A DNA stretch of 64,000 nt, from contig NC_043005.1 of NCBI RefSeq assembly GCF_006345805.1, forward strand, positions 64,728,001-64,792,000, in the 5' to 3' direction. Positions 15,901 through 57,846 of the stretch are shown here, piece by piece. This DNA comes from Octopus sinensis. Taxonomy: Eukaryota. Under the pieces are notes generated by a model. That model was given only the letters and a program-made list of their open reading frames with translations, made no database searches and was not told the DNA's origin. The position numbers were made by a program, and so were the translations under genes. Every line of letters starts with the position of its first letter. The first letter of the stretch is position 1.

Positions 15901-18167
15901 CAAAGTGAATTTCATTAAATCATGTTACAATGGCTCCAATCACATGCTGATATATATATATACATTATTAGCTTAAACCCCCAACCAATCAAAAGATTCA
16001 TAGGAAAATAATGTTATATTAATGATGACATCATTAAACAATGATGTCATCCTCATCATTATGAAAGGATGCATCAAGTTAGAAATTCCAACCAAAAACG
16101 GCATTTGGTTAAGTAAATGTTAGTAATAAAATAGATTGTTTACCACAGCAGTTGCCAAGTGCCTCCATGGTTCAATATTCTGGGCCATGTTGATGATAAT
16201 ATTCACTGCTTTGTTAAGTCCATGCTGTAGATCTTCAAGGCTAGGTCTCAAGACTACATCTGGGATTTCAAGTATTATGTCGCTTTTGAATAAGGCTGGC
16301 TGCCAGTAAGATTTTACATCTCCTTTATACTGAGTGTTGCTCTGAAGTGTTCTTTTCAACAAATTAAGAGTCATACGAGTGCCTAAAAGAAACAATAATA
16401 TTGACAACAGCATCTATATATATAAAGCTGAAGTTGTCTGTGCATGGCAGGTTTGGTAGCCTCCAACTAACACTATCTCCTCCGAGACCCTGCGGCGCAA
16501 GTTGACCAAAAAATAAAATAAGAATATGATAGAAGAAGGCCTGTTCTTCATTCTCTAGAAGACAAATTCAAATTGGACCATGTTAACACCAAAGATTATT
16601 TACATCAAAAAGGTGCTTTTTTTTCTATGAAAATCCCTATTTTTACGGTTTTTTGACTGCTCTGTTGCCATTTTTCGGTGTATTTCAACCAGAAAAATGT
16701 TTACTTAAAGAGAATAACAAGCTACATAATGGAAAATTTTTACTTTTCAAAAATTCTAATTCTAAAGGGTCGAAACAAACCCAATCAACGCCGGGCGATA
16801 CTGCTAGTAAATGATTAAATGTCCAATATTAATAATGGTGATAATCGAAATTGCTCAGTGGTTAGAGCATCAGGTTTACAATCTATATGGCTCAGTGGTT
16901 AGGGCATAAGACTTACAATCATGAGGTTGTGAGTTCAATTTCCAGACAGCTGTGTATTGTGTTCATGAGCAAGACACTTTATTTTTCACATTGCTCCTGT
17001 AGAAATGAGCTGTAACGTTACTGGTACCAAGCTGTATCTGTCTTTGCCTTTCCCTTGGATCACATTTGTGGTGTGGAGAAGGAAGACTGGTATGCATGGG
17101 TGACTGCTGGCCTTCCACAAGCAATTTTATCTGGACTTGTGTCTCAGAGGGGAAGCTTCTAGGTGCAATCCCATGGTCATTCATGACCGAAGGGCATCTT
17201 TACCGTTATCCTTGTACAATTATATGTTCTTATGTACCTGCTGTTTGTATGATGTTAAAGGAAGCAAGTCATATAGAATAAGAAACAGTTAGAGTAGCAG
17301 TGGTGGTAGAGTTGTTAGTGTTGTTGATGATGATAAATGGAGAAAGAAAGAGAGAGAGAGAGAGAGAGAGAGGGGAGGAGAAACAATGGGAGGAGCTTTA
17401 ACCCTTTTGTTACTGTATTTATTTTGAGATGCTCCGTATTTCTTTCAATTACTTTAAATATAACAAAGAATTTAATAAAATAACTTAGTTATCATTCAGC
17501 TAGTGATAGGAACACAAATTGTGACTAAGCTTTGGTGGAAGATTTTAATTCAAAACTTATGAAAACAAAACATTTGTACTCAGAGCCAGGGGCGGTTTCC
17601 GCCAGGTTGGTAATGAAAGGGTTAAATATGAAGAGTGAAGAAGGAAGGAAATACCAAGATGTAGTAAAGTTTATGATGTCATTGTACTTTTATTTATCTC
17701 ATTCTCTTCTTCTCTACTCCCTCTCTCTACCTGCATTTGTTTGAAGTGTTCTTAAATCGTATGTAAAATAATCATTTCACTCTATTTCTGTTATGCAGAA
17801 CATTCCAAACTCTGTAGTTGGTGATACATATTAATTTTAAACTTTCTATCACACTGACCCTATTTTATGTACTTGTTGCAACAAGAATATTTGCAAAACC
17901 AACCTTTTTTTTTTTTTGATGTGGTACTGCAATATACCTTACTCATTTACTCTTTTACTTGTTTCAGTCATTTGACTGTGGCCATGCTGGAACACCACCT
18001 TTAGTCAAGCAAATCGACCCCAGGACTTAGTCTTTGTAAGCCTAGTACTTATTCTATCAGTCTCTTTTGCCGAACTGCTAAGTTACGGGGACGTAAACAC
18101 ACCAACATCGGTTGGGGTAACAAACACAGACACACAAACACATACACACACATACATATATATATAT

Positions 18168-18200
<33 letters not shown>

Positions 18201-21200
18201 CATACATATATATGATGGGCTTTTTTCAGTTTCCGTCTACCAAATCCACTCATAAGGCTTTGGTCAGCCTGAGACTATAGTAGAAGATACTTGCCCAATG
18301 TGTCACGCAGTGGGACTGAACCTGGAACCATGGGATTTGTAAGCAAGCTACTTACCACACAGCCACTCCTACGCCTACACCTTGGATGTTATCATCAAGT
18401 AACAAGTAAAGTTATATTGCTTTCAACTTTTGGCACAAGGCCAGCAATTTGAGGAAAGTGGGGGAGTAAGTCATTTACATTGACTGCAGTACTCAACTGA
18501 TACTTGTTTTATTGAACCTCCATAAAAGATGAAAGGTAAAATCAACCTCAGCAGAATTTGAACTCAGAACATAAAGATGTACGAAATGCTACTAAGTATT
18601 TTGCCTGGTGTGTTAATGATTCTGCCAGCTTGCTACTTTAATATGTAATGTTATATCAAGACCTAAATCATTGACATATATATGTAAATGTATGTAGGCA
18701 TAAAATTGCTGGCTATCCCAACCATAAACTACAGCTTCAATATAATAAAGTGTAAATTAAATTAAAAGATCTGAGATCTGAGAACCCCTTCGGTCATGAC
18801 ACAGACCATGGGATTGCACCTAGAAAGTTACCCTCCTAGGCACAAGTCCGGGCAAGGTTGTTTTATGGAAGACCAGCAGTCACCCATGCATACCGGCCTC
18901 CCCTCTCCATGCCACCAGTGTTATCCAAGGGAAAGGCAAAGGCAGATACAACTTGGCACCTTTCACGTCGCAACTCATTTCTACAGCTGAGTGAACTGGA
19001 GCAACATGAAATAAAGTGTCTTGCTCAAGAATACAACATGCAGCCCGGCCCAGGATTCGAACTCACAACCTCACAATTGTAAGCTCAACGCTCTAACCAC
19101 TGAGCCATGTGCCTTCACAAATTAAAAGAAATGCTTAAGATAATAAAGCTAAAAACTACTTACAAACTGTAGTATCTGAAGGCTGATTCATATTTTTGAA
19201 ACATAGCATAGCTTCTCTGAAGACATGATATGGAATGGAAGCACTCCGTCGGTAACGACAATGAGGGTTCCGATTGATCCGAATCAACGGAACAGCCTGC
19301 TCATGAAATTAACGTGTAAGTGACTGAGCACTCCACAGACACGTGCACCCTTAACGTAGTTCTCGGGGATATTCAGCATGGCACAGAGAGTGACAAGGCC
19401 GGCCCCTTGAAATACAGGTACAACAGAAACAGGAAGTAAGAGTGAGAGAAAGTTGTGGTGAAAGAGTACAGCAGGGATCACCACCATCCCCTGCCGCAGC
19501 CTCGTGGAGCTTTTAGGTGTTTTCGCTCAATAAACACTCTGGGAATTGAAACCACGATCCTATGACTGCGAGTCCGCTGCCCTAACCACTGGGCCATTGC
19601 ACTTCCACAAAGACATGATAAGTATAATATTGAAATAATTTCACTTTTAAAAAGAAAAGTTTAATGTATTTGTCCTGGATGACTCTAACAATGAATTCTG
19701 TGTGGATAACTCAGTAAATTTTCTTTGGTGGGGAGGATATAAATGATTACAAAAGCCATTCAATGAAAAATGGGAGTGATACTTATTCTCTCCTTTTTGT
19801 TGAATAGCATCTGTCAGTTATAGTAATGTTCTTTATAAAGCAGAGATCAATGACTGGTTTGGAATCCTGATCTTGCAGCATGTGGCATAGAACCTTAGCT
19901 CACATCTAAACTCGTCAACAAATGTTTGTAGAAGCATTTCAATATTTCACTACTGTTTTATTGTGAAAGCACCTGATTCAGAGGTTAGAGTGTTGGGCTC
20001 ACAATCATGAGGTAGTGAGTTCCATTCCCAGACCAGGCTGTGTATTGTGTTCTGGAGCAAGACACTTTATTTCACATTGTTCCAGTTCACTCAGCTGTAG
20101 ATATGAGTTGCGATGTCACTAGTGCCAAGCTATGTCAGACATTGCTTTTCCCTTGGGTAACACTGGCAGCATGGAAAAGGGGAGGTTAGTATACACGGGT
20201 GATTGCTGGTCTTCCATAAACAACCTTGCCCAGACTTGTGCATCAGAGGAGAACTTTGTAGGTGCAATCTCATGGTCATTCACGATCAAAGGGGGTTTTT
20301 ACCCGTTTTACTGTTTTATCAATAGACAGCAAAATCAACTCAGTTGCGGTTATGTTAACCCTCGATTCAAATCCTATGATAATAAGTTATTGTGGCTGGA
20401 AACGTTTTTTTTTTTTTTTTTTCATCATGTGTTGTTTATACAGCATTGACCTGGGACTGAACTACATAAACATAGATTTCCTTCAAAGATAATTAATTTT
20501 TTATAATTTTTCTAGTCTTGAGATAAGTGGTAAAATTGTACAAGCCAGGCAGGAAACCTCTATGTGTAATTTGAACTGCTAAATATAGCATCCAAGTCAC
20601 CCTCATATTACCTTTATAACTCAGAAAAAATCTGCAGTGGATAAAGTTGTCCTGGGTGCAAATACCTGATGGTCACAGATGAAGTACCTTTGATCATAGG
20701 TCTACTGAATCTGGACTGCCCTGAGTCTAACAATAACAACTATATCAGTTTTTAGCTTAGCTGAGACATGAAGGGTAAAATAACTTGCCAAAGAGTCCAC
20801 TGTTAAATGTGCTGAAATGCTTTAAAACTTAACTCTAAACTCTATTTAGCTTAGATATTCAAAAGAAAACTTTTTTTATATTGTCTTCTCAGTTATAAAA
20901 GTAGCACTACTCAAGTTGTTTGCACACCATAAATGCTTTGTTTATTTTAACATTTGAGATAGAACTTAATTGAGGGGTGCCTTCTTTCCCAGCATTGCAA
21001 ACTGAAAAACTTCTTATTGGTTATATACAGTTATTATACACTACAGAAATTTTATTCCCCACAGTACTTGTTAAGAGCTAATCTATCAAATGTTTAAGTT
21101 ACTTAGAAGCATACCAAAGCAATGATAAAATTTAAACATTCCATCCTACAGTCAGCAGATTTACAACCTAACAGTCTCAACACTGACTCATGTGCCTTAT

Positions 21201-23465
21201 AGTCTAATACAACTGAGCAATTGAAATGTAAACAGTATCTACTTACTCTTTACAAGAGCATCAGTGTTTTTCTGTGTGAAGTAAATTAGCATGTTATGGT
21301 AACCACAAGCTAGGCATTCATTGCAAGGCTGATTTTTATATTTGGTATCTGGATTAGTACACGGGTAACCATTCTCAGCTATAAGGTATTTTTTCACATC
21401 TAGTTCCAAGTTTGACTTCAGTAAATCGAAAAGTTCCCCAACAGACATTTCAATCAGTTTGCTTGAACTGAAATAAAATATAAAAAAATAATCATTATTA
21501 AGTTGAACCACTGCATATATCCCCCCTTCTTTTTCTAGCACCATTCCTTTGTTTTAAACCTAATGTAATCCAATCTATCCCTCTCCATCCATTCACTTCC
21601 CCCTTCAAATTTTTTTATCAACAGTTATTTGTCTATATTTACAAAGTTTGCAATTCTTATAGAATGGTGATAGTAATTGAAAATTGTAGGAAAGCTTCAT
21701 TCCCAAACCAGACAGACATATAACAGGATAGCCAAAACTCAAGACCTTTAGTGAGACACAACTTTATATGTGGATGTACTTGATGAGACCCAGACTGCAA
21801 AGTGGCTGAAACACAACATGTTGAATGGAGTCCCACCCATAAGGTTTAGTAGCAGGATGGGTCGAAACGACTGTTGTACAAACAAAGATTATTACCAAAT
21901 CCACCTTCTAGTTACTTAAAAAATTACTATCATTATATATATTTAACTAGAGGTTAAAATAGTTTCATTAAGGGATTATAATATCTAATGAATTACTGGT
22001 TCATTGCCTCATATTTTTTGTGAATATTAATATTCATAAAATAATACGTCTAAATATAAATCTTGGTTTGTAAATTTTCAAAAGAAAATTTAGAAAATAA
22101 AGATGTATTTATTTATGTGTATCTTTATATTTATATATTTGGAATTATTATTTCCGTTTTATAAGTGTAGAAGAATATATGTATGTATTTTGATTTTCAA
22201 ATGTGGTAATTAATTATGTTCCTCTAGTTTCTGCTTGTATTACCTCCACTGAAATTATTAAGTGATATATATATATATATATATATACTTACATTGAGTA
22301 TGCACATCTACATTTTCTCTCATTTTCCTGTCTTTTTTTCACATATATTTAAGCACTTTCCTTAAGAAAATAATGCATGATTATTCTCTCCTGAGAAATG
22401 TTCAGGTTCTAATTGATTGTTGAAAATCTTCATTGTGTGTAAATTATAAAGCAGCATTGATAATATACCATTGAAGTCTTTGGATTCTTCAGCTAATTTC
22501 ATTGCGTATACACATCTACATTTTCTCTCGTTCTCCTGTCTTTTTACACATATATTTAAGCACTTTTCATGTGATCAGGTTTTACCAGTTATTAATCACC
22601 TTATTCAAAGAAAATCCTATTAGTGTTCTTTGCAATGACGGAATCCATTTAGAAGAGTATTTTCTAACTTTCATTTTCACATCATTCAGCCCTGAGACAA
22701 TATATCATTTGGAGTTAGCTCTTTATCCAGAGCTTAATCATCATAGTTATTAATTCCAAAGTGATGAGCGCTACATGTTAGAATGCCAGCTGCTCGTTTA
22801 TAATTTCTTTTACATTAATAATAGGTAAAGCAGACACTTTTGAAATTGCATCCTTTGATATCTTACAATAAATGAAACACAATACATTTGCATTACAAAA
22901 GGGGAAATGATCACTGCCAGTCAAGAGCTGACACAGAATTATAGAAGATTAATTGTCAAATATACCCACAAAACAGATGAGTTTTTCTAAACCTCTGCAT
23001 CAAATGTCAGTTTTTTCTTTACCTTTTCTTTCCTCATAAAATTTGTTTACTACGATTAGGCAAAATAGTTGTGAAAAAAATTGATTACATGACATTGATA
23101 ATATACCATTGAAGTCTTCGGATTCCTCAGCTAATTTCAATGAGCATGCACATCTACATTTATCATCATGTCCTATTATTTATCATCATGATAAATACTA
23201 GGACGTGCTATTGTCCTATTATTTATCATTGTCATCATCATCATCATTATCATTTAAACAATATACACATGCCTGTATGAGTCAGATGGAGTTGTACTGA
23301 GGCAGAGTTTTTGCAGTTGGATGCCCTTCCCTTTCTTCCAAAAAAGGTAATATTTCCCCATGGCCAGGCATGATTTTTGCAGAATATTGGAAATAAATGA
23401 GTCATTTATGAGTCAATCATGTGATGTCAAAACAAAGAGACACTAACACACAAACACACACACAA

Positions 23466-23508
<43 letters not shown>

Positions 23509-44314: not shown

Positions 44315-44669
44315 AGTACACACATATGCACATGCACACACACACATACATATATATTCATGCACATCCTGCTGGTGGTGTAAAGCACTTGTGGTGGTTC
44401 CACATAAAAGCACCCATATGATACCACGTAAAAGCGCCCATGTGGTGCCATGTAAAAGTGTCTATACAGTGGCACGTAAGAGCACCCATGCAACACCATA
44501 AAAGCACCCAGCACACTCTGTAAAATGGTTGGCATTAGGAAGGGCATCCAGCCATAGAAACCATGCCAAATCAGACTGGAGTCTGGTGCAGCTCCCCAAG
44601 CTTGCTAGCTCTGGTCAAACCATCCAACCCATGCCAGCACGGACAGCTGATGTTAAATGATGACGACAT

Positions 44670-44706
<37 letters not shown>

Positions 44707-46954: not shown

Positions 46955-47000
<46 letters not shown>

Positions 47001-48846: not shown

Positions 48847-48883
<37 letters not shown>

Positions 48884-51039
48884 ATATATATACATATACA
48901 TATATTTATATATTAAGGTGTTTGGGAAGTAATTGCATTTTATCAGAGAGGATATAAAAACAAATGTAAATTATATTTATCAATCACATTTATCAATTAT
49001 CAGTTTCAATGACTGCAGCCCAACGGGGAAGTAACTAATATATGCCACGTGCAAAGAAACCTATTTCTTTTCCTGAAAAAGTTTAAATGCCTATTTTCGA
49101 CTTCCTCTCATTTTCTGAATGTTTTGCCTCTTAAAAAGTGCTCTAGTGATCAGAACAGATGGAAATCTGTAGGTGCTAAATCAGGGGAGAATGGAGGATG
49201 TGGAAGAACTTATCATCGTAACAATTTTATTTTTTTCGTGAGGTTTGCTTTGAAGAGTGTAGCCATGCATTGTCATGCTGGAAAATAACACCTTTTCTGT
49301 TTACCAAAACTGGCCACTTTCGATGTAATTTTACATTTAAATGATGAAGTGAGCGAGTTGATAATAGAGTAATACCAAGAATTCTTTGGAAAATTCCTAA
49401 TTTTCCAAAGAATTAAGGAATAATTAACCAAATAGTTTTACTATTTGTTACATGAAATCTAGTTGTAAGGATATAAACGATATCAATTTTGATTTATAAG
49501 CCAACATCAAACAGAGATAACCCTTATTTAAACCCCTTTTTTTTCATTCTAAAGGTAAATCTGTCTTTCAAAGATAGTTACACTAAAAATAAGGTAACTA
49601 CTAGTAAAACTATTTGGTTAATTATTCCTTATGGGAGGCAAATAAAATCTAATCTCCCTTTGCAGTTTCGTGAAGCTATTATTAGGAATTTTCCAAAGAA
49701 TTCTAGTATTACTCTATTATCAACTCACATACAGTTATTATTGTTTTTTCCAACACAAAAAACTCTTACAAATTATCTCCTCACATAATATTAGCTTGTT
49801 AAATAGGGATACATTTACTAATACTAACGTTAATTTAGCTAATACCATCCATCCCACGAGAAATATTAATAACAAGGTTATTGTATCTGAAGTCAATTAC
49901 AACAGAATCAAGTTTATGTCAAATAACTCTAAAATTAAAACTTCTATATACCAGTGTAAAATTACTTCAGGTAATAATGTATTTTTTATATAGGCAGTTC
50001 ATCTTCTCAGTTATCTAAAAGAATTTCTAATCATTACTCTACATTTAGGGATAGGAATAAACGTAACAGTACAGGGCTTAGTAAATTAATTTGGTATCTA
50101 AAAGACCACAGCAAAAAATTTAATTTAAATTGGTTGATTTTCTCAATTTCGATCCCTTATGATAAAGGCAAGGAATTCTGTCTTCTCTGTAATTCTGAAC
50201 TATTTCCTATTCTTTTTTCTAAAAATCCCCTGGTAAACATGGATATAAAGCCTGCATATTGAAGTAAACATTGGAAGAAACACACCTTTAGTTCATATAA
50301 GTGATATCTATCATTATGTATAATTTAAACATTAATTTTCTTCTTGCATTTCACATTCACTAGATATATCTTTTTCTAAGACTTTAGAGTTTTATTTAAT
50401 TTATATATCGTTATATACTTCTCATTTATTTGGGGTTTTTTCTCCTTTATCCCTCCTCTTTCTATAGGCTACCTCTGACATTATATCCTCTAACATTAAA
50501 AAAAATATTTAATAATGTTCAGTTACTATACTTATCCATCATATTTTGTTAAACTGTCTTATTGACGAGTTTCATTTCTTCATTTCCCTGAAGAGAAGAT
50601 TACATTGTTTAACACCATTTTACTCCTTTGGAATAATACCAGTGATATCTTCGAAACATGTGTGGGAAGTAAAAGAATTTGAATAACACCTGCATTTAAC
50701 ACCATTTATTTATTTATATCTGTTATACAAAACATTTCACGTAAACCCAGATTTTCTACCTTTAAAAACAAGGTCTTCAGATACAATAACCTTGTTATTA
50801 ATATTTCTAGGGGGATGGATGGTATTAGCTAAATTAATCATCTCAAATTTCATTATAAGTGCTAGAGCACGTTGTGTCTGAACATTAAAATATAAAAATA
50901 GTTTTAATGTATTGTTCCCTTTTTAACAACTAACATAGAAAAAATAGATAAATAGTTACCAGGGTAACAAAAAATTGCACAAGTAGCCCTAGTAACTATT
51001 TATCTATTTTTTCCATGTTGTTAAAAAGGGAAAAATACA

Positions 51040-51104
<65 letters not shown>

Positions 51105-51107
51105 ATG

Positions 51108-51142
<35 letters not shown>

Positions 51143-54023
51143 CTATACACACAAATACATACAGAGTGTGATAGGAGGAGAAAAATCGAGAGAAACAAGT
51201 GAGAAATGAAGGTTATATATGATGTATTAAATTCTATGATTTAACAGTTGAGGAAAATTATAGACATTTCTTTTACTTGGTGTTACAAAGTTTATGAAGT
51301 GTTCATCAATTGGTAGTAAGTTTACTCATCTATACAAACTCATCATGTTAGTAGCATTAGTATAAATAAGATATAAAAAATTGTTATTTCAGATATAAAT
51401 ATAAATTGGAAGGAAAATTACTTTCACAATTTCAGGTTTCTTTATAAAACATTTCATTGGTTCTTCAATCTTCCTGTGTAACTGCTGAGCCCACATAATT
51501 CGACCAGCTGTTGGTGGTATGTTGTTAGGGATCTCTGGGTCTGCTCTTTGCTTTTGGTAGAGCTTACGAATTGTTTCTAAGTCTTTGCCATAGTTTCTCA
51601 ACAAAGTAAAGAAACGCTCGTTGAGGTCCAGCTTGTTGATCATCTCAAATTTCAGTATAAGCGCTAGAGCACGTTGTGTCTGAACATTAAAATACGAAAA
51701 TAGTTTTAATGTATTTAAGATTGCCAAAATAAAACAGCAAAATCATAGAAAAGCAAGGAAAATATATAGCAGGTGCTACATTTATTATTAGTGCATAAAT
51801 ACACATGAAAACACATGCTCTGTGACATATCTTGTATGTAATCATGACACAACAACATACCTATTACTATTCTGTATATGCATACACACACACACACCAC
51901 ACACACACACACACACATACACTTACAAGCAGCAAAATTCTTTGTGTTTTTTTTAAATGAAACAATCATTTTTGCTTAGATTAAATTGTGTATTGATATC
52001 AGATTTTTGTCAAGCAGAAGTTATGTTTACAAGCAGCAGTTACCATCATATAATCTCTTTAATCATGATAAATACTAAGTTTCTTAAAATCACTTCTACC
52101 ATTTTTCTTAATGAGAAATTGCTTCTTGGTTTTAAAATGTAAATTCACACATATGCAGCAAGCATGGCTGTGTGGTTAAAATATCCACTTTGCAACCACA
52201 TTGATTTCAGGTTCGATTCCAACTGTGTGACACTTTCTCCTGTAGCCCTGGACTGACCAATGAACTAGTCTGGGAACTTTCTATTACCACCTCATACAGT
52301 ATTATACATCCAACACAGTCGGCCTTACCAATTGGTTTCACACTAGGGGTTCAACAGTGTTAAGTTAACATTCTGATTATGTAACCATACATTCTTCAGA
52401 GATGGCAGCTATGGAATGGAATATGGTGACTGTGGTTTAAATGGAAAAGGGTTAAATAACTTAGAAATTATACTTAATTGATTTAAAGATTATAACTTAA
52501 AGTATCATATAAAAAATGCATTTTTCACAATGAAGTCAGCTATTTTGGTCATATTGGTAGATTTTCACTCTTACAAAAGTGTATCTGGGAAATAGCAATT
52601 CGGCTGTGTTGCAAATGCTAGCTCATATCATATATTCATTAAGAACATGGCATTACAAGCTGTAATATAATTTAGAAGAAAAGAACATACTATTCAATTA
52701 GTCAGCAGTTTATTAGTCATGTGACTGATGCTACATATTGCAGTAGTTGTATCATTAATGCTGCAATGCATCTATTGCAACATGAAATAGAGATGAACAT
52801 TCTATTCCCTCACTGGAACATGCACTCAATGTATATCAACGTTGATATTCACAAAGCGATGAAGAGGGATTATTTATTATATTTGGTCTTCATAATTCAA
52901 ATTGCATGCTGTATAGATAACTGGATCTAAATAAATACACACTGACTCTGAGGGACCATTTTATAGTAAAATGTAGCTTATTGTCATTTATTTGTTCTCA
53001 AAATTTCGATGTATTTCGCAACAACATCAATCATATTAATGAAACATTGGCAATGCTCTGTTGAATTATTGTCATTAAAGGATTTCTTAAAACCATTATT
53101 CCCAGCAATGGAATTCAATATGTGTCATCTAAATTTAAACAATTTTGATGATCAAATGAGCATTCAATATTTCATGCCAACTAATGCTCATCCAACTTCA
53201 GGCAGTAAAATAGAACGCTTTGTTCAGATATTCAAAGAAAAAATTCAAAAGCAATACCATTATAATCATTCATTGGTGGAAGAAGAATCAACATTTTTAA
53301 AATTTTCATATTGTTCTGCACCACATCTAGAGTATTAGGCAGAAAATTTCTGGCAGTACTGAAGCATGGCCAACAGACATCAACAATTATGCCATTATTA
53401 TTACTGACAAACCATGATCAAATGGAGGACAGACAATAGCTTCAATAAATTATATATTGGATAATCAGTATTTGTAATTGATTATCAAAACAAAAACTAA
53501 ATGGATTTGTGACACACTTATAAAGAAACTTGATTCAGACAACAGGAATGAAAATGACATCAGATTCAGATTTGGTTGCAGGATTATCCATTTCCATTGA
53601 CAACTAGACATACATTTGACCAATTCAATCACTGGTAGTTGTATGAAATTAATACACAGCTATTATTGCCCCACTCTCACCTGCTGTGTGTGATTTACCT
53701 TTTTTTTTTCACAATTACCACAATCAGTATCACAATAGTGCAGTTCTGCCAGGTAACAATGAGCATGGGTGTGATCATCAATTAAATGACAAAGAGAAGA
53801 TATTACTCTTTTACTCTTTTACTTGTTTCAGTCATTTGACTGTGGCCATGCTGGAGCACCACCTTTAGTCGAGCAAATCGACCCCCAGGACTTATTCTTT
53901 GTAAGCCTAGTACTTATTCTATCGGTCTCTTTTGCCGAACCGCTAAGTTGTGGGGACGTAAACACACCAGCATTGGTTGTCAAGCGAGGTTGGGGGGACA
54001 AACACAGACACGCAAACATATAC

Positions 54024-54112
<89 letters not shown>

Positions 54113-57100
54113 CATATATACGACGGGCTTCTTTCAGTTTCTGTCTACCAAATCCACTCACAAGGCTTTGGTCAGCCCAAGGCTATAGTAGAAGACACTT
54201 GCCCAAGATTACATGCAGTGGGACTGAACCATGAACCATGTGGTTCATAAGCAAGTTACTTACCACACAGCCACTTCTTAAAATTTATCAATTCTTACAT
54301 ATTTTATTTTATTATCATACAACCTGGCAAAATCATTAAAATGTTGAAGAAAATGCTTATTGGCATTTTGCTCATCTGTATCTTCTGAGTTCAAATTCCC
54401 CCTAGGTCGACTTTACCCTTCATCCTTCCATGGTAATAAAATAAGTACCTGTCAAGCACTGGGGTTGATATAATCAACTAGCCCCTTCCACTAAATTTCA
54501 GGCCTTGTTCCTATTGTAGATAGGATTATTATACAAAATTCATCACATATTAACTTGTCACTGTATGTCATACAGCCATCTTGTTAGCCAGCCCTCAATC
54601 AAATCATCCAACCCATGCTAGCATGGAAAGCGGACATTAAACAATGATGATGATGATTATTATTATTAGACTGAAACTGGAATTGACCATTAACATATTC
54701 AATGACTCAATTGTAGATTAGTTTTTGTATTTATTTATTAGTGCAAACTGTTGAAAGAATGCTGTTACATTTTCAGTAAGGCATGACCTTCGAAAGTTGG
54801 ACCTCATGGAGGCGATGACAAGTGACCAAGACCTCTGGAGATATGCTGTGCTTGAGAAGACCCAGCAAGCCAAGAGAGGCTGTAACTGTGGTCTATTCCA
54901 GCACAACAGAACCAGCCCATTTAAGAGTATCCTTCAACCATTGGCAATAAACTGCGCTTGTAAAAACCTGTTGAGTCAAGTGAAGTCATTGTTGTGGCCG
55001 ATGACAGTACCGCCTGACTGGTCCCGTGCTAGTGGCACGTAAAAAGCACCACTTGAGCATGGTTGTTATCAGTGCTGTCTGACTGGCCTTCATGCTGGTG
55101 GCACATAGGAAGGGCATCCAGCTGTAGAAACCTTGTCAGATCAGACTGGAGCTTGGTGTAGCCTCCTGGATTGCCAGCCCTCAGTCAAACATCCAACCCA
55201 TGCCAGTATGGAAAGCAGATGTTAAACGACAACGATGGTGATGATGATTCTATTATAGCTATACTTATTTGATTTATCATACGTATTTCACATGACTGGT
55301 ATTTGCATCTCATGTACATCTGCTTACAATGTTTTAATGATAAATTCCAGTACTAATGGTAAATTCTTGTGGTGTAAATAAGCTGTCATGATGTGGAAAG
55401 GGGTTGGTGAAAGTGTGTGCATGATAGAGAGAGAGAGATTCAAACAAGTGCTACTAGCATGTGCACACACACACACACACACAACAATTAACTGTGTGTG
55501 TACGTATACATGGGATAGTGGCAGAGAGTATGTATATGCATACACACATACACATAGGAACTAATGGAGAACTTACTTTTATAAAAAATATTCTTTTCTA
55601 CTCTAGGCACAAGGCCCAAAATTTTTGGTGGGGGGTGGTTTCCCAAGCCGGCAGCATGTAAAAAGTACTATTGAAACATGATCGATGCTAGTGCCTCCTG
55701 ACTGGCTCCTGTGCCAGTGGTACATAAAAAGCACCATCCAAATGTAGCCCATGCCAGTGCCCCTGACTGGTTCCCATGCTGGTGGCATGTAAAAATCGCT
55801 ATGCGAACATGATCGATGCCAGAGCCACTTGACTGGCTCCCATGCCAGTGGCACGTAAAAAGCACCCACTGCACTCTCAGAGTGGTTGGCGTTAGGAAGG
55901 GCATCCAGCTATAGAAACATTGCCAGATCAGATTGGAGCCTGCTGCAGCCTTCTGGCCAAACTGGCCAACCCATGCCAGCATGGAAAACAGACGTTACAC
56001 AATGATAATGATAAGTCAAAGAATTTGGTAGTACTGAACAATATGTTGTTGTATTTTGCCCTGTGATTTAGGGTCTCTGGGTCATGGAGTACATGGATAT
56101 CTTTTGCTTTGCATCACTTTAGTGTCATCTGAACAGTTGATGCTAAGTTTGGCTGATTGTTTATTTTTGCCATGTCTGAGAACAGAGGAAAGGAAACTGA
56201 GAATGGTGTCATGTAGTACTTGCCTTATTACCAAACATTTTATAGACGGCACCATTGACTGCCAGCATTTAACATTGGGCAAACCTTGGGAAAGGCTTTG
56301 GTAAAATAAATGTACACACAGAGCGAAATGGCAGAGCCTTCAGATTTTTCTTGTGTTGCTGTAGAAGGTGTGTTGAACTGTTTCATTCAGTGTGGAAGTC
56401 ATGTCGGGTGATGTTAAAAATCTCCATTTTATTATGTTTCTACTTACAATTCTGTCTATGTTTGAGATGTTGAGTGACATGGGTCTCTTAATGTTTGTAT
56501 CTTACTGCAGGGCTGGCCCAAGGTACTGGTAACTAAGCCGGTCACCTGGGACACCATGTGCTAGGGGGTGCCAAGGAAGGTGTGACAAAGACAAGGAAAT
56601 TTCCACAACTGTCAGCTTGTACACACCGAAGTTCAGCTTACTTGGGGTGCCAGCAACCCTAGGGCTGGCCCAGCTTACTGTCACCTTTTGGCATTTCTAG
56701 CATTCATCTACTACCTAGATGGTTCTGATAAAATGCCATCAATGATCTAGAAAGCCAGACTTGGCAGAATTTCAATAGTAGAGTTGAAGGATGCCTGATC
56801 TGAGGGTTCAAATGACATCAGAATTTCTAATTAATTCAATTATGTCCTGTTCGTCTGTCTTACATTGTTGTGAGAAGTTGTTGCCAAAAGAATATATTAG
56901 TGCATTCAATATGTTGCTCTGTCTTTAACTGGGAAAAGTTGCTTAGCTATTGTTCTTTGAGTTGTTGGCTAGTCTGTGAAAGATCATTCATATATAATCT
57001 ATCTGGACATTGAGACAGACCAGTTTTTACTTTCAAGAAAGGAAGGAAGGAAGGAAGGAAGAGAGAGAGGGATGGAGGGAGGAAGAAAGGAAGGAAGGAA

Positions 57101-57409
57101 GGAAGAAACAAACAAACACACACACACACAAACACACACACACATGTAAAAAGATACATTTATGTATATGCATGCATACATGTAAACATGGGTACTTTCA
57201 AATGCATACACACACACACATACAAATACAAACATTCAATGATATCAAACATTATTTAGCAAAAACTTATAACTGGAAGTAAAATGTATATAAAACTAGG
57301 TAATCTTTAAACTTACAGAAAATCTTTCAATCCAGCTGTCAATGAGTACGAGTATCATCAAACACAGATAGTCAATTTGACTCATGAAATTTACATAGTC
57401 TTGATCAAA
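2437..57409 (-). CDS. DNAH5: Axonemal outer-arm dynein heavy chain, DNAH5/DNAH8-like (partial; 10 exons, 1761 nt, 587 codons of the N-terminal tail)
   Basis: Exons join in phase with no stops. Peptides FDQDY, TQRAL..KFE, NYGKDLETIRKLYQKQ, PPTAGRIMWAQQL, ELFVNFD, LTWTSINID, YFTQKNTDALVK, LEDLQHGLNKAV and SEFEENLRHF are collinear with vertebrate DNAH5 as recalled. DNAH8 or another paralogue cannot be excluded. Confidence 0.9.
2900..3600 (-). mobile_element. Degenerate DNA transposase remnant (hAT-like C-terminal region)
   Basis: ORF 3168-3467 plus flanking broken frames resemble a hAT-type dimerisation region; recalled similarity only. Confidence 0.45.
3640..3945 (-). mobile_element. SINE family B (tRNA-derived)
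   Basis: Head TGGCCTAGTG.TTAGGG..GGTTTCGATTCCC; body TTGAGCGAAAACACCTAAGCTCCACGAG. Confidence 0.85.
4365..4725 (-). mobile_element. SINE family A (tRNA-derived; octopus OK/OR-type)
   Basis: Head GGAGTGGCTGTGTGG..GGTTCAGTCCC; tail CAGCATGGCC.CAGTCAAATGACTGAAACAAGTAAAAG. Confidence 0.85.
4989..5415 (+). mobile_element. SINE family A
   Basis: Diverged full-length copy. Confidence 0.8.
5745..6080 (-). mobile_element. CR1/L2-type LINE 3' end
   Basis: TGRHCMVP..NSLGFRGPQLFNILPKCLRN..FKTKLDLFLSGVPDEP..AAASNSL, then 3' UTR hairpin and repeat tail. Confidence 0.85.
6411..6822 (+). mobile_element. SINE family A
   Basis: Full-length copy. Confidence 0.9.
7103..7322. mobile_element. piggyBac-like MITE
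   Basis: TTAA|CCCTTTAG...CTAAAGAG|TTAA. Confidence 0.7.
7650..8047 (-). mobile_element. SINE family A
   Basis: Full-length copy. Confidence 0.9.
8610..8760 (+). mobile_element. SINE family A, 5' part
   Basis: Head and core only. Confidence 0.7.
8765..8858. repeat. (TA)n microsatellite
   Basis: Read directly. Confidence 0.95.
8890..9195 (+). mobile_element. Penelope-like pLTR fragment between (TA)n tracts
   Basis: Pyrimidine-rich segment carrying the minimal hammerhead-like motif CCGACGAAGAG-CTCCA-CTCGAAACGTC. Confidence 0.5.
9259..9536. repeat. ~280-bp imperfect palindrome
   Basis: Arms are reverse-complementary around TAAGT|ACTTA at 9385/9386. Confidence 0.9.
9975..10085. repeat. (TG)n/(TGCG)n microsatellite
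   Basis: Read directly. Confidence 0.95.
10509..10721 (-). CDS. DNAH5: Dynein exon: PESSDVDITES...KTFFKIISEHKDIVK...SELWTR
   Basis: acatttag acceptor, gtatac donor, 213 nt, phase 0/0. Confidence 0.9.
11310..11950 (+). mobile_element. RTE LINE apurinic endonuclease fragment
   Basis: SALIAHELSRLDIDITALSEV..MIKNSIASKLETLP..KVIILGDFNARLG..GNCNNNGYLLLEFC. Confidence 0.85.
12150..12365 (-). mobile_element. RTE LINE 3' ORF fragment
   Basis: VDGTCGRGRPRKTWDEVVKTDLRMLGLTEEMT. Confidence 0.8.
13470..14110 (+). mobile_element. RTE LINE RT fragment
   Basis: VGVPQGSVLSP, YADD (tatgctgatgat) and FYYLGDTISKGVGCSESIVARV..WKKFRE. Confidence 0.85.
14250..14990 (+). mobile_element. Degenerate Penelope-like element (linker and GIY-YIG region)
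   Basis: IINNRRQALNLERLLTKLRF..VKNCKEPRGICEII and HLDICA..FPF..KEEYLIK motifs, with stops. Confidence 0.65.
16144..16382 (-). CDS. DNAH5: Dynein exon: (S)TRMTLNLLKR...RPSLEDLQHGLNKAV...HLATAV
   Basis: tcttttag acceptor, gtaaac donor, 239 nt, phase 1/0. Confidence 0.92.
16413..16807 (+). mobile_element. Non-autonomous Helitron, copy 1
   Basis: 5' TC, 3' GC-rich hairpin (CCCaatcaacgccGGG variant) then CTAG; inserted between A and T with no TSD. Confidence 0.8.
16885..17205 (+). mobile_element. SINE family C (tRNA head with CORE-like segment)
   Basis: TGGCTCAGTGGTTAG..GAGTTCAATT..TGAGCAAGACACTTTA. Confidence 0.85.
17402..17621. mobile_element. piggyBac-like MITE
   Basis: TTAA|CCCTTT...AAAGGG|TTAA; a related copy at ~59200-59580 is split by a SINE. 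Confidence 0.7.
17945..18378 (-). mobile_element. SINE family A
   Basis: Full-length copy. Confidence 0.9.
18415..18635 (-). mobile_element. SINE family D
   Basis: TTCTGAGTTCAAATTC..GAGGT.GACTTTGCCTTTCATCCTT core, reverse orientation. Confidence 0.75.
18782..19117 (-). mobile_element. SINE family C
   Basis: Reverse-complement copy. Confidence 0.85.
19212..19610 (-). mobile_element. SINE family B variant with a different 3' domain
   Basis: Family-B head and body joined to a GTGTCTGTGGAGTGCTCAG..GTTCCGTTGAT domain. Confidence 0.8.
19975..20303 (+). mobile_element. SINE family C
   Basis: Copy. Confidence 0.85.
21247..21467 (-). CDS. DNAH5: Dynein exon: SSKLIEMSVGEL...YFTQKNTDALVK
   Basis: tatttcag acceptor, gtaagt donor, 221 nt, phase 2/1. 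Confidence 0.92.
21775..21880 (+). ncRNA. Type I hammerhead-like fold, decayed (C3U)
   Basis: UGUAC-UUGAUGA-GACCCA...UGGGUC-GAAA-C(GACU)GU-U-GUACA. Confidence 0.6.
23527..23900 (+). mobile_element. Degenerate Tc1/mariner-like MITE
   Basis: CAGGGTGTTCAG start in TA/CA context; broken transposase-like frame. Confidence 0.4.
24210..24605 (-). mobile_element. SINE family A
   Basis: Full-length copy. Confidence 0.9.
24729..24936 (-). CDS. DNAH5: Dynein exon: (Y)IKTSKEAVDRFKVLVKRVTDLLECQID...AATNLS(V)
   Basis: attttcag acceptor, gtatgt donor, 208 nt, phase 1/2. Confidence 0.9.
25502..25790 (+). mobile_element. SINE family B variant
   Basis: TGGCCTAGTGGTTAG..GGTTCGAATCTC head. Confidence 0.8.
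25843..26215 (+). mobile_element. SINE family D, two adjacent copies
   Basis: GGTGAGCTGGCAGAATTGTTAGCA head; core repeated at ~26072. Confidence 0.75.
26361..26734 (+). mobile_element. Helentron-associated (HINE/DINE-1-like) non-autonomous element
   Basis: 5' subTIR TTACCTCTGCC with an adjacent inverted partner, (TTTG/TCTG)n tract, 3' subTIR GGCAGAGG and a degenerate terminal hairpin. Confidence 0.55.
27116..27345 (+). mobile_element. SINE family D
   Basis: Copy. Confidence 0.85.
27403..27745 (-). mobile_element. SINE family C
   Basis: Copy. Confidence 0.85.
27890..28460 (+). mobile_element. Mariner transposase remnant (internally deleted)
   Basis: QVFEWHMYFKSG..TPENMRKIHELIHDD helix-turn-helix region and a HPPY.PD..PCNF-like motif. 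Confidence 0.7.
30007..30158 (-). CDS. DNAH5: Dynein exon: (W)FQDVLNEFKHIKAKIP...LTWTSINIDT
   Basis: gtttgaag acceptor, gtgagt donor, 152 nt, phase 2/1. Confidence 0.92.
30625..31080 (-). mobile_element. SINE family A with tandemly amplified 5' end
   Basis: Full length, plus 4 copies of a 15-nt head unit. Confidence 0.9.
31175..31614 (-). mobile_element. SINE family A
   Basis: Full-length copy. Confidence 0.9.
31681..32230 (+). mobile_element. Fold-back plus pLTR-like repeat carrying a hammerhead (probable PLE remnant)
   Basis: ~75-bp inverted arms at 31681-31908; internal segment repeated at 32127-32210; hammerhead at 32010-32056. Confidence 0.55.
32010..32056 (+). ncRNA. Type I hammerhead ribozyme candidate (intact core)
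   Basis: ACACAGA-CUGAAGA-UGGGU/ACCCA-GAAA-C(UCGG)GU-C-UGUGUGU. Confidence 0.7.
32408..32466. repeat. (CT)n microsatellite
   Basis: Read directly. Confidence 0.95.
32950..33480 (-). mobile_element. Degenerate CR1-type LINE RT fragment
   Basis: EPVQDLEIMM..CNF..YWEILNSL motifs with stops and frameshifts. Confidence 0.55.
33677..35858 (+). mobile_element. Sola2-like DNA transposon, near full length, pseudogenised
   Basis: NPDIFCYICG, KLGDEDKPWAPHKVC, PFGIPMVWREPS, IDSSKRSLKAVLLHNGN, PCFLCEWDSRA, LLPPLYIKLGLMKQF and HSHLDYFP..SEEHGERFH motifs with frameshifts; degenerate ~110-bp TIRs. Confidence 0.75.
36590..36925 (-). mobile_element. RTE 3' UTR fragment
   Basis: (cat)n tail, CCACGCTAGCATGGG, UTR motif units. 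Confidence 0.8.
37640..38052 (+). mobile_element. SINE family A
   Basis: Full-length copy, ~100 nt from an exon donor. Confidence 0.9.
38153..38382 (-). CDS. DNAH5: Dynein exon: LCYYHSWYKAV...ELFVNFDIQ...KILLP(W)
   Basis: tttttaag acceptor, gtatgt donor, 230 nt, phase 0/2. Confidence 0.92.
38455..39165 (-). mobile_element. CR1-type LINE 3' RT fragment
   Basis: ORF 38608-39210: MVRPHLEFASPVWNPYL..LEAVQQCATR..NTRGHVYK..RKHFFTLKVAEAWNKLP. Confidence 0.9.
39553..39618 (-). CDS. DNAH5: Dynein exon: HPDGQRIMANYRKLTKCLQTYE
   Basis: atttttag acceptor, gtgagt donor, 66 nt; aligns with the DNAH5 [21 protein letters not shown] segment. Confidence 0.88.
39666..40041 (+). mobile_element. Non-autonomous Helitron, copy 2
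   Basis: Same ~390-bp sequence; A|TC...CCCGAGCAACGCCGGG...CTAG|T. Confidence 0.82.
40786..41775 (+). mobile_element. RTE LINE 3' end with repeat-rich 3' UTR and (GAT)n tail
   Basis: ORF 40961-41164 (GTCGRGRPRKTWDEVVKHDL), UTR motif units, CCATGCTAGCATGG, (gat)n. Confidence 0.9.
41773..41898. repeat. (TA)n microsatellite
   Basis: Read directly. Confidence 0.95.
42232..42700 (-). mobile_element. RTE 3' UTR fragment
   Basis: Same tail; at least 4 motif units at ~64-nt spacing. Confidence 0.8.
42900..43118 (+). mobile_element. SINE family D
   Basis: Copy. Confidence 0.85.
43173..43590 (+). mobile_element. SINE family A
   Basis: Full-length copy, near consensus. Confidence 0.9.
43901..44270. 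repeat. Minisatellite, 3 units of ~120-150 bp
   Basis: Unit TAAACACTGCAAGGTATTCCTTTTGGTGCCTTTATTCTTCA...(CA)n. Confidence 0.85.
44345..44708 (+). mobile_element. RTE 3' UTR fragment
   Basis: AGGAAGGGCATCCAGC..CCATGCCAGCA..(gat)n. Confidence 0.75.
44718..44952 (+). mobile_element. SINE family D
   Basis: Copy. Confidence 0.85.
45862..46220 (+). mobile_element. SINE family A
   Basis: Diverged copy. Confidence 0.8.
46228..46760 (+). mobile_element. Tc1/mariner-type element remnant
   Basis: TA-CAGGATG start; SWLSDNF..LPPNSSDCNPFDYDVW motif. Confidence 0.7.
47113..48300 (-). mobile_element. hAT (Charlie/Buster, GTF2IRD2-like) transposon 3' part
   Basis: ORF 47817-48296 (LKQFYELKEGVKVFM..FLEDISSHLNNLNLK..FTHFPKL); TIR CAGGGATGGGGAAAC at 47113. 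Confidence 0.8.
48300..48790 (+). mobile_element. RTE 3' UTR fragment
   Basis: UTR motifs and (gat)n tail. Confidence 0.7.
48911..49340 (-). mobile_element. Mariner remnant
   Basis: FQHDNAWLH..VLPHPPFSPDLAPTDFHLF motif on the minus strand. Confidence 0.8.
49355..50836 (+). mobile_element. Penelope-like element, 3' part (GIY-YIG endonuclease remnant, pLTR with hammerhead, inverted flanking fragments)
   Basis: SIYQCKIT...(frameshift)YIGSSSSQLSKRISNHYSTF..NSTGLSKLIWYLKD..CLLCNSE matches the PLE GIY-YIG domain; hammerhead fold at 50582-50670. Confidence 0.85.
50582..50670 (+). ncRNA. Type I hammerhead-like fold in PLE pLTR (GUG at cleavage site)
   Basis: AUUUCC-CUGAAGA-GAAGAU...AUCUUC-GAAA-C(AUGU)GU-G-GGAAGU. 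Confidence 0.65.
51422..51679 (-). CDS. DNAH5: Dynein exon: TQRALALILKFE...KKPEIVK
   Basis: tgttcag acceptor, gtaatt donor, 258 nt, phase 0/0; inside ORF 51389-51727. Confidence 0.95.
52700..53520 (+). mobile_element. Ty3/gypsy integrase remnant
   Basis: TNAHPTSGSKIERFVQIFKEKIQK..FLKFSYCSAPH resembles the rve HP.SNG..ER..TFK motif. Confidence 0.55.
53806..54275 (-). mobile_element. SINE family A
   Basis: Full-length copy. Confidence 0.9.
54320..54530 (+). mobile_element. SINE family D
   Basis: Diverged copy. Confidence 0.7.
54775..55250 (+). mobile_element. RTE 3' end fragment
   Basis: HDLRKLDLMEAMTSDQDLWRYAVLEKT followed by UTR and tail. Confidence 0.8.
55640..56012 (+). mobile_element. 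RTE 3' UTR fragment
   Basis: Three motif units at ~65-nt spacing and tail. Confidence 0.75.
56508..56673. mobile_element. hAT-like MITE
   Basis: CAGGGCTGGCCC / GGGCTGGCCCAG termini; CTTACTG duplicated on both sides. Confidence 0.6.
57317..57409 (-). CDS. DNAH5: Dynein exon: FDQDYVNFMSQIDYLCLMILVLIDSWIERFS
   Basis: ttcatttcag acceptor, gtaagt donor, 93 nt, phase 0/0. Confidence 0.9.
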
Positions 57410-57452
57410 CTGAAATGAAAGGAAAATAATGAAAGTAGCATCAAACAGGAAA

Positions 57453-57846
57453 TCTCTCTGTATATATAAAGCTGAAGTTGTCTGAGTATGGCAGGTTTGG
57501 TAGCCTTCAACTAACACTATCTTCTCTGAGACCCTGCGAAACAAGTTGACCAAAATTGAGAGTATGATAGAAGAAGGCTTGCTCTTCCTTCCGTAGAAGA
57601 AAAAATTCAAATCGGACCATGTTAACACCAAAAATTATTTACATCAAAAAGGTACTTTTTTTCTATGAAAATCTCTACTTTTTACGATTTTTTGACTGCT
57701 GTGTCGCCATTTTTCGGTGTATTTCAACCAGAAAAATGTTCACTTAAAGAGAATAACAAGCTACATAATGCAAAAGTTTTACTTTTCAAAAGTTCCAATT
57801 CTAAAGGGTCGAAACAAACCCGAGCAACGCCGGGAGATACTGCTAG
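57453..57846 (+). mobile_element. Non-autonomous Helitron, copy 3
   Basis: Same family; A|TC...CCCGAGCAACGCCGGG...CTAG|T. Confidence 0.82.

Follow-up and report, generated by a model that had tools for sequence, protein, structure and literature searches.

The window analysed here is a stretch of 64,000 nucleotides of Octopus sinensis DNA, and it holds on the minus strand a part of a DNAH5-like axonemal dynein heavy chain gene (ten-exon model, 2437..57409), together with three copies of a Helitron-like element that lie antisense to that gene. The exons were called by tblastn with a bird DNAH5-like protein and by AG/GT sites, and they splice into a stop-free frame of 1761 nt, encoding 587 aa that are colinear with residues 533-1176 of human DNAH5 (E=2.5e-85) and ungapped at the junctions. 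The best protein match of the exons carries PF08385, and the protein search with them returned two distant proteins only, with no ortholog of the source species among them. The acceptors are at 57409, 51679, 39618, 38382, 30158, 24936, 21467, 16382, 10721 and 2517. While 16382 and 39618 are confirmed by the colinear frame, 57409 is the start of the alignment and its phase is not cross-checked; no exon upstream of it was found in the window. The features are as follows.

2437..57409, minus strand: ten-exon segment of a DNAH5-like outer-arm axonemal dynein heavy chain (tail, DHC_N1), from tblastn, AG/GT sites and the spliced frame
57317..57409, minus strand: dynein exon E1, 93 nt, FDQDY...; aligned at its start to residue 533 of human DNAH5
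39553..39618, minus strand: dynein exon E3, 66 nt, HPDGQRIMANYRKLTKCLQTYE; phase 0 at both ends
16144..16382, minus strand: dynein exon E8, 239 nt; acceptor phase 1, in agreement with the E7 donor
51679-51422, 38382-38153, 30158-30007, 24936-24729, 21467-21247, 10721-10509 and 2517-2437, minus strand: the seven remaining exons, with the element upstream of none
16413..16807, plus strand: Helitron-like copy 1, 395 bp, antisense to the gene; 5'-TC end 30 nt from the E8 acceptor
39666..40041, plus strand: Helitron-like copy 2, 376 bp, antisense; 5'-TC end 47 nt from the E3 acceptor
57453..57846, plus strand: Helitron-like copy 3, 394 bp, antisense; 5' end 43 nt from the E1 acceptor
57819..57834, plus strand: short G+C-rich subterminal palindrome (CCCGAGCAACGCCGGG), ending 12 nt before the 3' CTAG of copy 3
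16383..16412, minus strand: spacer before E8, 30 nt, with polypyrimidine tract and AG; neither an internal AG nor yTnAy
39619..39665, minus strand: spacer before E3, 47 nt, with polypyrimidine tract and AG; candidate branch point TTGAT at -39
57410..57452, minus strand: spacer before E1, 43 nt, with strong polypyrimidine tract and AG; candidate branch points at -31 and -20

Identity of the element

Pairwise identity among the three copies is 86-90% by blastn and alignment, their K2P distances are 0.067-0.091, and they differ by 7-9%. Compared with copy 1, copy 2 has deletions of 15 nt and 6 nt, while copy 3 has four additional nucleotides (TCTC) at its 5' end; shared indels set copy 1 apart from copies 2 and 3, which makes two subfamilies. 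The homology between copies begins with TCTATA... or TCTCTCTGTATA... and ends with ...CTAG, the T past CTAG belonging to the flank. With a size of 376-395 bp, every copy thus shows one boundary pattern, A/TC...CTAG/T (slashes marking the boundaries): the termini TC and CTAG agree with the TC and CTRR ends of Helitrons (HLE1), and the insertion lies between A and T in all three cases, so that the joined flanks read AT as in a Helitron target. No direct repeat (TSD) was found flanking any of the copies, and an inverted-repeat search found no pairing between the two ends of the element, that is, no terminal inverted repeats. The subterminal palindrome recurs in copy 2 (40014-40029), while copy 1 has a mutated form; the hairpin, whose G+C-rich stem has 6 bp and a bulge in copies 2 and 3, is weak, with an energy no better than that of shuffles (z ~ -0.3). 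Altogether the sequence supports a probable non-autonomous Helitron with the canonical structural hallmarks (5'-TC, 3'-CTAG, A/T target, neither TSD nor TIR). No RepHel partner lies within the 64-kb window.

Other classes were considered and rejected. A SINE or other retroposon, read on the gene strand, is contradicted by the lack of a Pol III-type head (ARAGORN, Rfam) and of a TSD, and a MITE or TIR DNA transposon by the lack of both terminal inverted repeats and a TSD. As for a snoRNA, tRNA or other RNA gene inside the element, Rfam (at the gathering threshold and also at E<=1) and ARAGORN were empty, and the element is antisense to its host gene. Intronic snoRNAs likewise sit at a set distance from acceptors.

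The original prediction, made from the letters of the window, had described a Helitron family with three copies at these coordinates and none elsewhere in the 64 kb. Blastn, alignment and the TC/CTAG ends confirm the family and its copies, and the searches of the window bear out the rest: blastn (word size 7, E<=1) gave no further copy or fragment, and nhmmer --max with a profile of the three copies gave no extra copy, the next-best match having E = 6. Beyond the window, scans for exact patterns returned nothing or chance matches of 18-22 nt only, in metagenome contigs (two patterns) as in genome and viral contigs, and a profile of the antisense ORF of the element matched none of 5.8 billion proteins.

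Spacers and splice signals

All three insertions lie upstream of an AG-free zone. Candidate branch points are retained in the E1 and E3 spacers, and the sole AG of the E1 spacer is the one that straddles its junction with the element. For E8, the yTnAy nearest to the acceptor is TTTAT with its A at -40, inside the terminal TA-rich end of the element. By the exon model and its AG/GT sites, the picture drawn in the original prediction is accurate: the upper ends of the three exons (16382, 39618 and 57409, the last being the alignment start) are right, the spacers of 30, 47 and 43 nt are exact, and all three copies are antisense and leave the polypyrimidine tract and AG intact.

Statistics of the position

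All three copies lie at most 47 nt upstream of an acceptor, in a window of 64 kb with ten acceptors. The probability that a random non-exonic position falls within 50 nt upstream of an acceptor is 0.0082; uniform placement gives P ~5.5e-7 for three copies and 7e-8 when all are antisense, and the rough arithmetic put forward earlier (0.8% per copy, ~6e-8 for three) was therefore about right. A null of oriented AT sites gives P ~1.9e-7, and a composition-matched null (A-rich 5' flank, AT-rich 3' flank), whose thresholds were fitted post hoc to the three sites, gives 0.024 per site and P ~1.4e-5 for three. Moreover, when the 75 repeat intervals of the window are ranked by their distance to an exon edge, setting aside a duplicated piece of exon E2 itself, the three closest are exactly these copies, a chance of 1 in 67,525 (1.5e-5). 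The main SINE-like family (17 copies) is scattered through the introns in mixed orientation. A few unrecognised exons near the window ends would increase the chance probability only slightly. The proximity to acceptors is strongly non-random under every null built within the window.

Does this merely reflect coincidence, an ordinary Helitron family of the usual AT-rich preference having landed three times near acceptors, with the pattern noticed post hoc? We consider this unlikely, but it is the alternative that deserves the most serious attention. The copies are three in number; the choice of distance cut-off, feature class and family was made after looking; the composition-matched null lifts the per-site probability as given above; and orientation alone is not significant (1/4 to 1/8), other families being mixed. 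Moreover, the prior for splice-site targeting is low, because we know of no transposon that targets splice acceptors and the literature describes none; in particular our literature search found no description of such targeting by Helitrons, in agreement with what had been supposed at the outset. However, even the most lenient nulls still give 1.4e-5 to 1.5e-5, and allowing for tens of family-by-feature combinations in the window leaves less than ~1e-3.

Selective retention and sequence preference as possible alternatives

A second alternative is retention or exaptation, in which insertion is unbiased and the copies adjacent to acceptors are kept since the end of the element supplies or modulates splicing signals, for example a branch point, the boundary of the AG-free zone or an enhancer. 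In its favour, the TTTAT at -40 in the terminal TA-rich end of the element is the only yTnAy within 70 nt of the E8 acceptor, the terminal AGA of the element delimits the AG-free zone at E8 and E1, and a block of ~70 nt within the element varies less than the remainder (P ~0.016). However, across the 55 kb of intron neutral copies would be expected to outnumber selected ones and none is there; older TEs persist throughout the same introns, so a loss of interior copies is not general; and in mammals, TEs this near to acceptors are usually harmful (PMC3088655). We therefore hold retention alone to be improbable.

A third alternative, which we rate as slightly more improbable still, is that the enzyme simply prefers A/T sites flanked by A-rich sequence on the 5' side and AT-rich sequence on the 3' side, as offered by the complement of a polypyrimidine tract, while proximity and antisense orientation are by-products. 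In fact all three sites have 50-60% A in the 5' flank (30 nt) and 80-85% AT in the 3' flank (20 nt), and sites eligible under the composition null are ~4-fold enriched near acceptors and nearly all antisense there (19/22). Helraiser likewise targets AT in AT-rich DNA, with the flank preference strongest on the 3' side (PMC4778049). Yet with the fitted thresholds just 2.4% of the eligible sites of the window are acceptor-proximal, which leads to the 1.4e-5 for three. Moreover, the three empty sites share no target motif beyond composition (summed pairwise similarity, P=0.42), and plain sequence preference thus does not account for the position. Targeting by composition only was rejected accordingly, as it accounts for the orientation and the ~4-fold enrichment but not for the position. 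Among the 5' flanks there is a CAACA-like word, and two of the 3' flanks contain TWAATG; these looked suggestive, but the similarity of the empty sites is at chance.

Independence and age of the insertions

The flanks of the copies are unrelated to each other on both sides by alignment, the window has neither Ns nor gaps, and the other TEs in the same introns are older (74-81% identity). These sequence comparisons support three independent insertions into pre-existing introns of the DNAH5-like gene, roughly 7-15 million years old if the quoted octopus-repeat rate applies; Helitrons are reported to have expanded in Octopus at a JC distance of ~0.09 (PMC13282606). Pfam scans of the long ORFs in the introns, intended to put names to neighbouring TEs, returned no hits.

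An introner-like origin, in which the elements created the introns and are hence seated at their ends, is very improbable. Helitron-derived introners do exist in a few species (PMC12130899), and a bird DNAH5-like gene is without an intron at the three corresponding positions, but its model is poor: it does not translate exactly and most junctions are unplaceable, and relative TE ages were used for the age of the introns instead. Against such an origin, the two host introns for which the upstream exon is mapped measure 4.9 and 11.8 kb, with the older TEs inside them, the 5' splice sites are kilobases from the elements, and the alignment with DNAH5 stays colinear over the junctions, the 30-47-nt spacers having cost the protein no residue. 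The introner class was rejected in view of elements that lie 30-47 nt outside the acceptor signals, in long introns with older TEs.

Local duplication, gene conversion or misassembly, which might be suggested by copies that share one gene, one orientation and a span of 41 kb (the original prediction had named local duplication and misassembly as refuting it), is likewise very improbable and was rejected, given the unrelated flanks on both sides, neighbouring exons that encode different, colinear parts of the dynein, copies 7-9% divergent with subfamily-specific indels, and an assembly free of gaps and Ns, so that the observation stands.

A proposed integration bias followed by selection

The reading that we favour, tentatively and at a little short of an even chance, is that the family integrates preferentially into the zone lying just upstream of the branch-point/polypyrimidine unit, with selection then acting as a filter. 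The RepHel of the family would favour a short zone immediately upstream of the branch-point/polypyrimidine/AG unit, and purifying selection would eliminate those insertions that disrupt the unit, so that copies would be left at the nearest tolerated position, -30 to -47 from the 3' splice sites. The bias may arise because the AT-rich, nucleosome-poor stretch before an exon is a favourable target as ssDNA or open chromatin. The host gene, encoding an axonemal dynein of the sperm flagellum, would be transcribed in the germ line, and such a target could appear, for example, behind an RNA polymerase slowed at the entry of an exon. What is known of Helitrons is as follows: Helitron nucleases, Helraiser included, cut ssDNA only, and Helraiser insertions are enriched in open chromatin and highly transcribed genes, with no local hopping (PMC4778049). 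In the gene, the template strand is the one that carries the top strand of the element, which would point to strand-specific capture rather than capture of the strand displaced by an R-loop. The R-loop idea of the original prediction agrees poorly with this, judging from the rolling-circle model (PMC4778049), as an R-loop exposes the non-template strand while the TC...CTAG strand of the element is on the template.

Several observations speak against biased integration. The events are three, in one gene, and were chosen post hoc by a reader scanning for oddities; the composition model by itself gives the ~4-fold per-site enrichment and explains the orientation; and the window may be atypical, because a family seated on 30% of acceptors genome-wide would probably have been reported. 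Moreover, the E8 spacer is without a consensus branch point, and the functional unit may therefore not lie wholly downstream of that insertion. The pattern therefore hints at a transposon aiming at intron ends, and three copies do not prove it; a 'splice-site-homing family', as originally proposed, is an extrapolation from three copies in one gene and is not shown by them. A bolder form is possible, though we lean against it: a Helitron lineage would integrate specifically into the terminal 30-60 nt of spliceosomal introns, using the template strand and pointing its 5' end at the exon, and its RepHel would capture DNA that becomes single-stranded or nucleosome-free at exon entry, in the course of germ-line transcription or of co-transcriptional splicing.

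If the pattern is genome-wide, rolling-circle transposons would have a new way of choosing their targets, and no mobile element before this one would have been known to take its position from splice acceptors. In that case transposition would be tied to exon chromatin or co-transcriptional events, the family would serve as a natural probe for ssDNA sites in transcribed genes, and it would provide a recurrent, orientation-fixed sequence next to exons that could alter cephalopod splicing. If it is not, the window is a striking coincidence of an ordinary Helitron family.

Comparison with known systems

The element resembles canonical non-autonomous Helitrons (HLE1), such as HelibatN mobilised by Helibat/Helraiser, in its TC/CTAG ends, its insertion between A and T and its lack of TSD and TIR, as well as in the G+C-rich palindrome ~12 nt before the 3' end, the AT-rich flanks and the non-coding sequence of a few hundred bp (PMC4778049, PMC11417382). 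However, known Helitrons have regional preferences only, for AT-rich DNA, promoters, open chromatin and transcribed genes, and no splice-site positioning on the nucleotide scale, whereas here all three copies are 30-47 nt before acceptors; the hairpin is also weak. In outline the pattern is like that of TRE5-A, which inserts ~50 bp upstream of tRNA genes in Dictyostelium, and of yeast Ty3/Ty1 at Pol III genes, in that a fixed short distance and orientation are kept to a recurring feature while the spacer is unrelated. TRE5-A and Ty3/Ty1 are retroelements tethered by Pol III factors, and their pattern is proven on hundreds of copies; in contrast, here we have a rolling-circle DNA transposon, a Pol II splice acceptor and three copies in one window.

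Introners, including the rare Helitron-derived ones (PMC12130899), also link a transposon family to intron boundaries. They differ since an introner is the whole intron and brings or recruits both splice sites, whereas the present elements fill 3-8% of their host introns, in the two cases that are measurable; these introns are long and predate the elements, and the elements lie outside the splice signals. Finally, L1/Alu and canine SINE insertions in polypyrimidine tracts are likewise antisense and less than 100 bp from acceptors (PMC3088655). Base composition at intron 3' ends can draw insertions in (PMC3088655). Mammalian introns are nevertheless depleted of TEs over the 50-100 bp next to exons, above all near acceptors, and insertions there are rare among fixed copies and over-represented in disease alleles (PMC3088655). 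Unlike in mammals, all the fixed copies of the present family in the window lie in that zone, and composition does not account for their position.

Exons of the host gene

The first protein search led to a bird "dynein axonemal heavy chain 5-like" fragment with PF08385, and by tblastn with this fragment the exons were mapped on the minus strand, the matches being extended to AG/GT sites with the codon phase kept.

Exons of the DNAH5-like gene, in gene order (window positions; evidence for each: tblastn and AG/GT sites)
57409-57317, minus strand, exon E1
51679-51422, minus strand, exon E2
39618-39553, minus strand, exon E3
38382-38153, minus strand, exon E4
30158-30007, minus strand, exon E5
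24936-24729, minus strand, exon E6
21467-21247, minus strand, exon E7
16382-16144, minus strand, exon E8
10721-10509, minus strand, exon E9
2517-2437, minus strand, exon E10

Spliced together, E1-E10 give a stop-free 1761-nt frame, whose 587-aa product is colinear with human DNAH5 residues 533-1176 (8j07; E=2.5e-85) with gap-free junctions; the open frame and the colinear alignment therefore validate the three acceptors of the original prediction. No exon preceding E1 was found within the window.

Two further observations concern the exons. An 80-nt piece across the E2 acceptor (51636-51715; 36 nt of intron and the first 44 nt of exon) recurs with 94% identity at 50834-50913, some 800 nt farther downstream within the intron that follows E2, with the translation ...FNVQTQRALALIMKFEMIN; possible readings are a pseudo-exon or decoy acceptor, or what is left of a small tandem duplication. 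As for the bird locus with a DNAH5-like gene (L022, JANKJQ010000519.1), its deposited protein model P0001 has no exact translation from its own contig and parts of it match two places within the locus, a sign that the model may be chimeric or duplicated; the exons there run on without a break where octopus has the three introns carrying Helitrons, most junctions not being placeable.

The element and its copies

Copies of the Helitron-like element (evidence for each: region reading, blastn, three-way alignment with flanks)
16413-16807, plus strand, copy 1, 395 bp
39666-40041, plus strand, copy 2, 376 bp
57453-57846, plus strand, copy 3, 394 bp

In the three-way alignment the homology starts at TCTATATA... 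in copies 1 and 2 and at TCTCTCTGTATA... in copy 3, stops at ...GCTAG in all three, and leaves mutually unrelated outer flanks. An A adjoins the 5' end of every copy and a T the 3' end, and neither target-site duplications nor terminal inverted repeats were found around the three. Because of these ends, the A/T flanks and the lack of both kinds of repeat, its classification as a canonical non-autonomous Helitron is structurally well supported; the short G+C-rich palindrome CCCGAGCAACGCCGGG, which in copies 2 and 3 stops 12 nt short of the 3' CTAG and in copy 1 is mutated, is a weak candidate for the hairpin, with a stability not above that of shuffled sequence. No RepHel partner lies in the window. 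That no copy lies elsewhere in the 64 kb was confirmed by blastn with 7-nt words and by an unfiltered profile search, which returned neither copies nor fragments (next-best E=6). A 14-nt exact match to the 5' region (copy 1 positions 11-24) occurs at 23634-23647, and a weak profile match extends it to 23689 at E=6, which is chance level and was not counted as a copy.

Shared indels divide the copies into two subfamilies, with K2P of 0.067-0.091 between copies and 2.4-5.2% divergence from their own majority consensus. In Octopus vulgaris a Helitron expansion is placed at a JC distance of ~0.09, or ~25 My (PMC13282606), and at the rate of that species the copies would be about 7-15 My old. An internal block of ~70 nt (alignment columns 243-312, for example window 57689-57758), reading TTTTTTGACTGC...TTCGGTGTATTTCAACCAGAAAAATGTT...AATAAC, varies in 3 columns, compared with 70 over all 401 (shuffle test P ~0.016), which could reflect mutational heterogeneity or constraint. 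ARAGORN and Rfam gave no RNA genes in the window or the element, and an intron-hosted small RNA was rejected on this account and because the element lies antisense to the gene.

Placement relative to the splicing signals

Copies 1, 2 and 3 lie 30, 47 and 43 nt upstream of E8, E3 and E1, exactly as originally predicted; all three lie antisense to the gene and point their TC end toward the exon, and the polypyrimidine tract and AG are kept in all three spacers. On the gene strand every copy ends in ...TATAGA, and the AG-free zone before the acceptor measures 29 nt at E8, 28 nt at E3 and 42 nt at E1. The E1 and E3 spacers still contain consensus-like branch points (TTGAT, TTCAT), and these two insertions therefore lie just upstream of the unit formed by branch point, polypyrimidine tract and AG.

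At the E1 end, a stop-free minus-strand ORF of 111 aa (57296-57631) runs from copy 3, in antisense, through the 43-nt spacer into E1 in frame, so that read-through would stay open given a cryptic upstream acceptor in copy 3 such as ACTTCAG|C; it is probably fortuitous.

The nulls were computed on the rebuilt pre-insertion sequence with the elements taken out. Under a uniform null, a non-exonic position falls at most 50 nt upstream of any of the ten acceptors with P=0.0082, hence 5.5e-7 for three copies and 7e-8 if all are antisense; limited to oriented A|T sites, the null gives 1.9e-7 for three copies. For an empirical check, the window was compared with itself, which yielded 75 repeated intervals covering 30% of it, and the three closest to any exon edge are the three copies (the duplicated E2 piece set aside), for which the probability is 1 in 67,525; after them come intervals at 98 and 116 nt, both measured to donors, against a median distance of 1.7 kb. 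The main SINE-like family, a control for transposon placement, has 17 copies scattered in introns with orientations 9 versus 8. This family (~420 bp; for example 43178-43592, 30624-31036, 63147-63565) dominates the repeats of the window; its head, GGCGCAGGAGTGGCTGTGTGGTAAG...GGTTCCGGGTTCAGTCCC, is tRNA-like, and a TA/TG microsatellite lies inside the element.

Inside the window, the acceptor association is thus statistically strong for n=3 copies. It is specific to the Helitron family and survives a generous within-window correction for families and features; the sample of three, and the number of windows scanned before the pattern was noticed, are real limits on it.

Explanations of the placement

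The placement is non-random, comes from independent events, and in its position is unexplained by composition or motif. The reading that we favour, tentatively, has two steps: integration would favour the acceptor-proximal zone, and copies breaking the splicing unit would be selected against. As to the cause of such a bias, we infer that the AT-rich stretch before an exon may be a spot for transient melting or nucleosome depletion, in a gene for which male germ-line transcription is expected. Single-stranded DNA is the only substrate that Helitron nucleases cut, and the Helitron Helraiser inserts at AT within AT-rich sequence, with enrichment in open chromatin and highly transcribed genes and no local hopping (PMC4778049). 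Here the TC...CTAG strand is the template strand of the gene, which would therefore be the acceptor of the transposon strand under the rolling-circle model; the R-loop, once proposed as the source of single strands, fits poorly since it exposes the non-template strand.

Coincidence, with three copies on one side and the composition-matched and repeat-interval probabilities on the other, is the strongest competitor, though unlikely. Selective retention or exaptation, by which acceptor-proximal copies would be kept for an effect on splicing, seems rather improbable; it is at E8 that such an effect is conceivable, where the spacer has no yTnAy, the nearest match (TTTAT, A at -40) lies within the TA-rich end of the element, and copy 1 may contribute to splicing. 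Slightly less probable still is a pure preference for flank composition. When the null is tailored after the fact to the three insertion sites, by requiring an A content of 50% or more over 30 nt on the 5' side and an AT content of 80% or more over 20 nt on the 3' side, the per-site P is 0.024 and that for three copies 1.4e-5; near acceptors 19/22 matched sites are antisense, and composition can therefore explain the orientation.

A specific target motif was rejected, as the three rebuilt empty sites resemble each other no more than random A-rich A|T sites do (P=0.42). Some local likenesses were seen: at copy 1 (window 16403-16438), GACAAC(AGC) in the 5' flank is the complement of GTTGTC, element positions 21-26, giving an imperfect 18-nt inverted repeat over the junction, and CAAC and CAAAC stand at a similar place in the copy 2 and 3 flanks, overall similarity of the three sites being at chance. 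Past CTAG, the first 10 nt of copies 1 and 2 (16808-16817 and 40042-40051) match at 8/10, TAAATGATTA / TTAATGCTTA, with copy 3 unlike them; such a match agrees with the reported preference of Helraiser for AT-rich 3' flanks and alone is not significant.

Local duplication or misassembly, for which the original prediction had allowed, is highly improbable: the flanks are unrelated, the adjoining exons cover distinct, colinear portions of the protein, the copies differ by the K2P distances and indel subfamilies described, and the window has no Ns. Equally improbable is an introner origin, since the two host introns for which the window includes the upstream exon span 4.9 and 11.8 kb, identity among their other repeats is lower, at 74-81%, than the 86-90% of the Helitron copies, the 5' splice sites are kilobases off, and no residues are lost at the junctions.

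Comparison with known systems

A splice-site-homing family, as originally proposed, is an attractive but hypothetical extrapolation from three insertions in one gene. Our literature search turned up neither a Helitron nor any other transposon described as positioned by splice acceptors. The nearest functional analogues are the position-specific retroelements at Pol III genes. Compared with canonical Helitrons (PMC11417382), the element is a structurally ordinary member, and Helitron-derived introners, which are known (PMC12130899), are a different thing. In mammals, fixed transposable elements are scarcer within 50-100 bp of exons, above all at acceptors, and insertions close to exons are over-represented among disease alleles (PMC3088655), a rule opposite to the acceptor-proximal pattern in this window.
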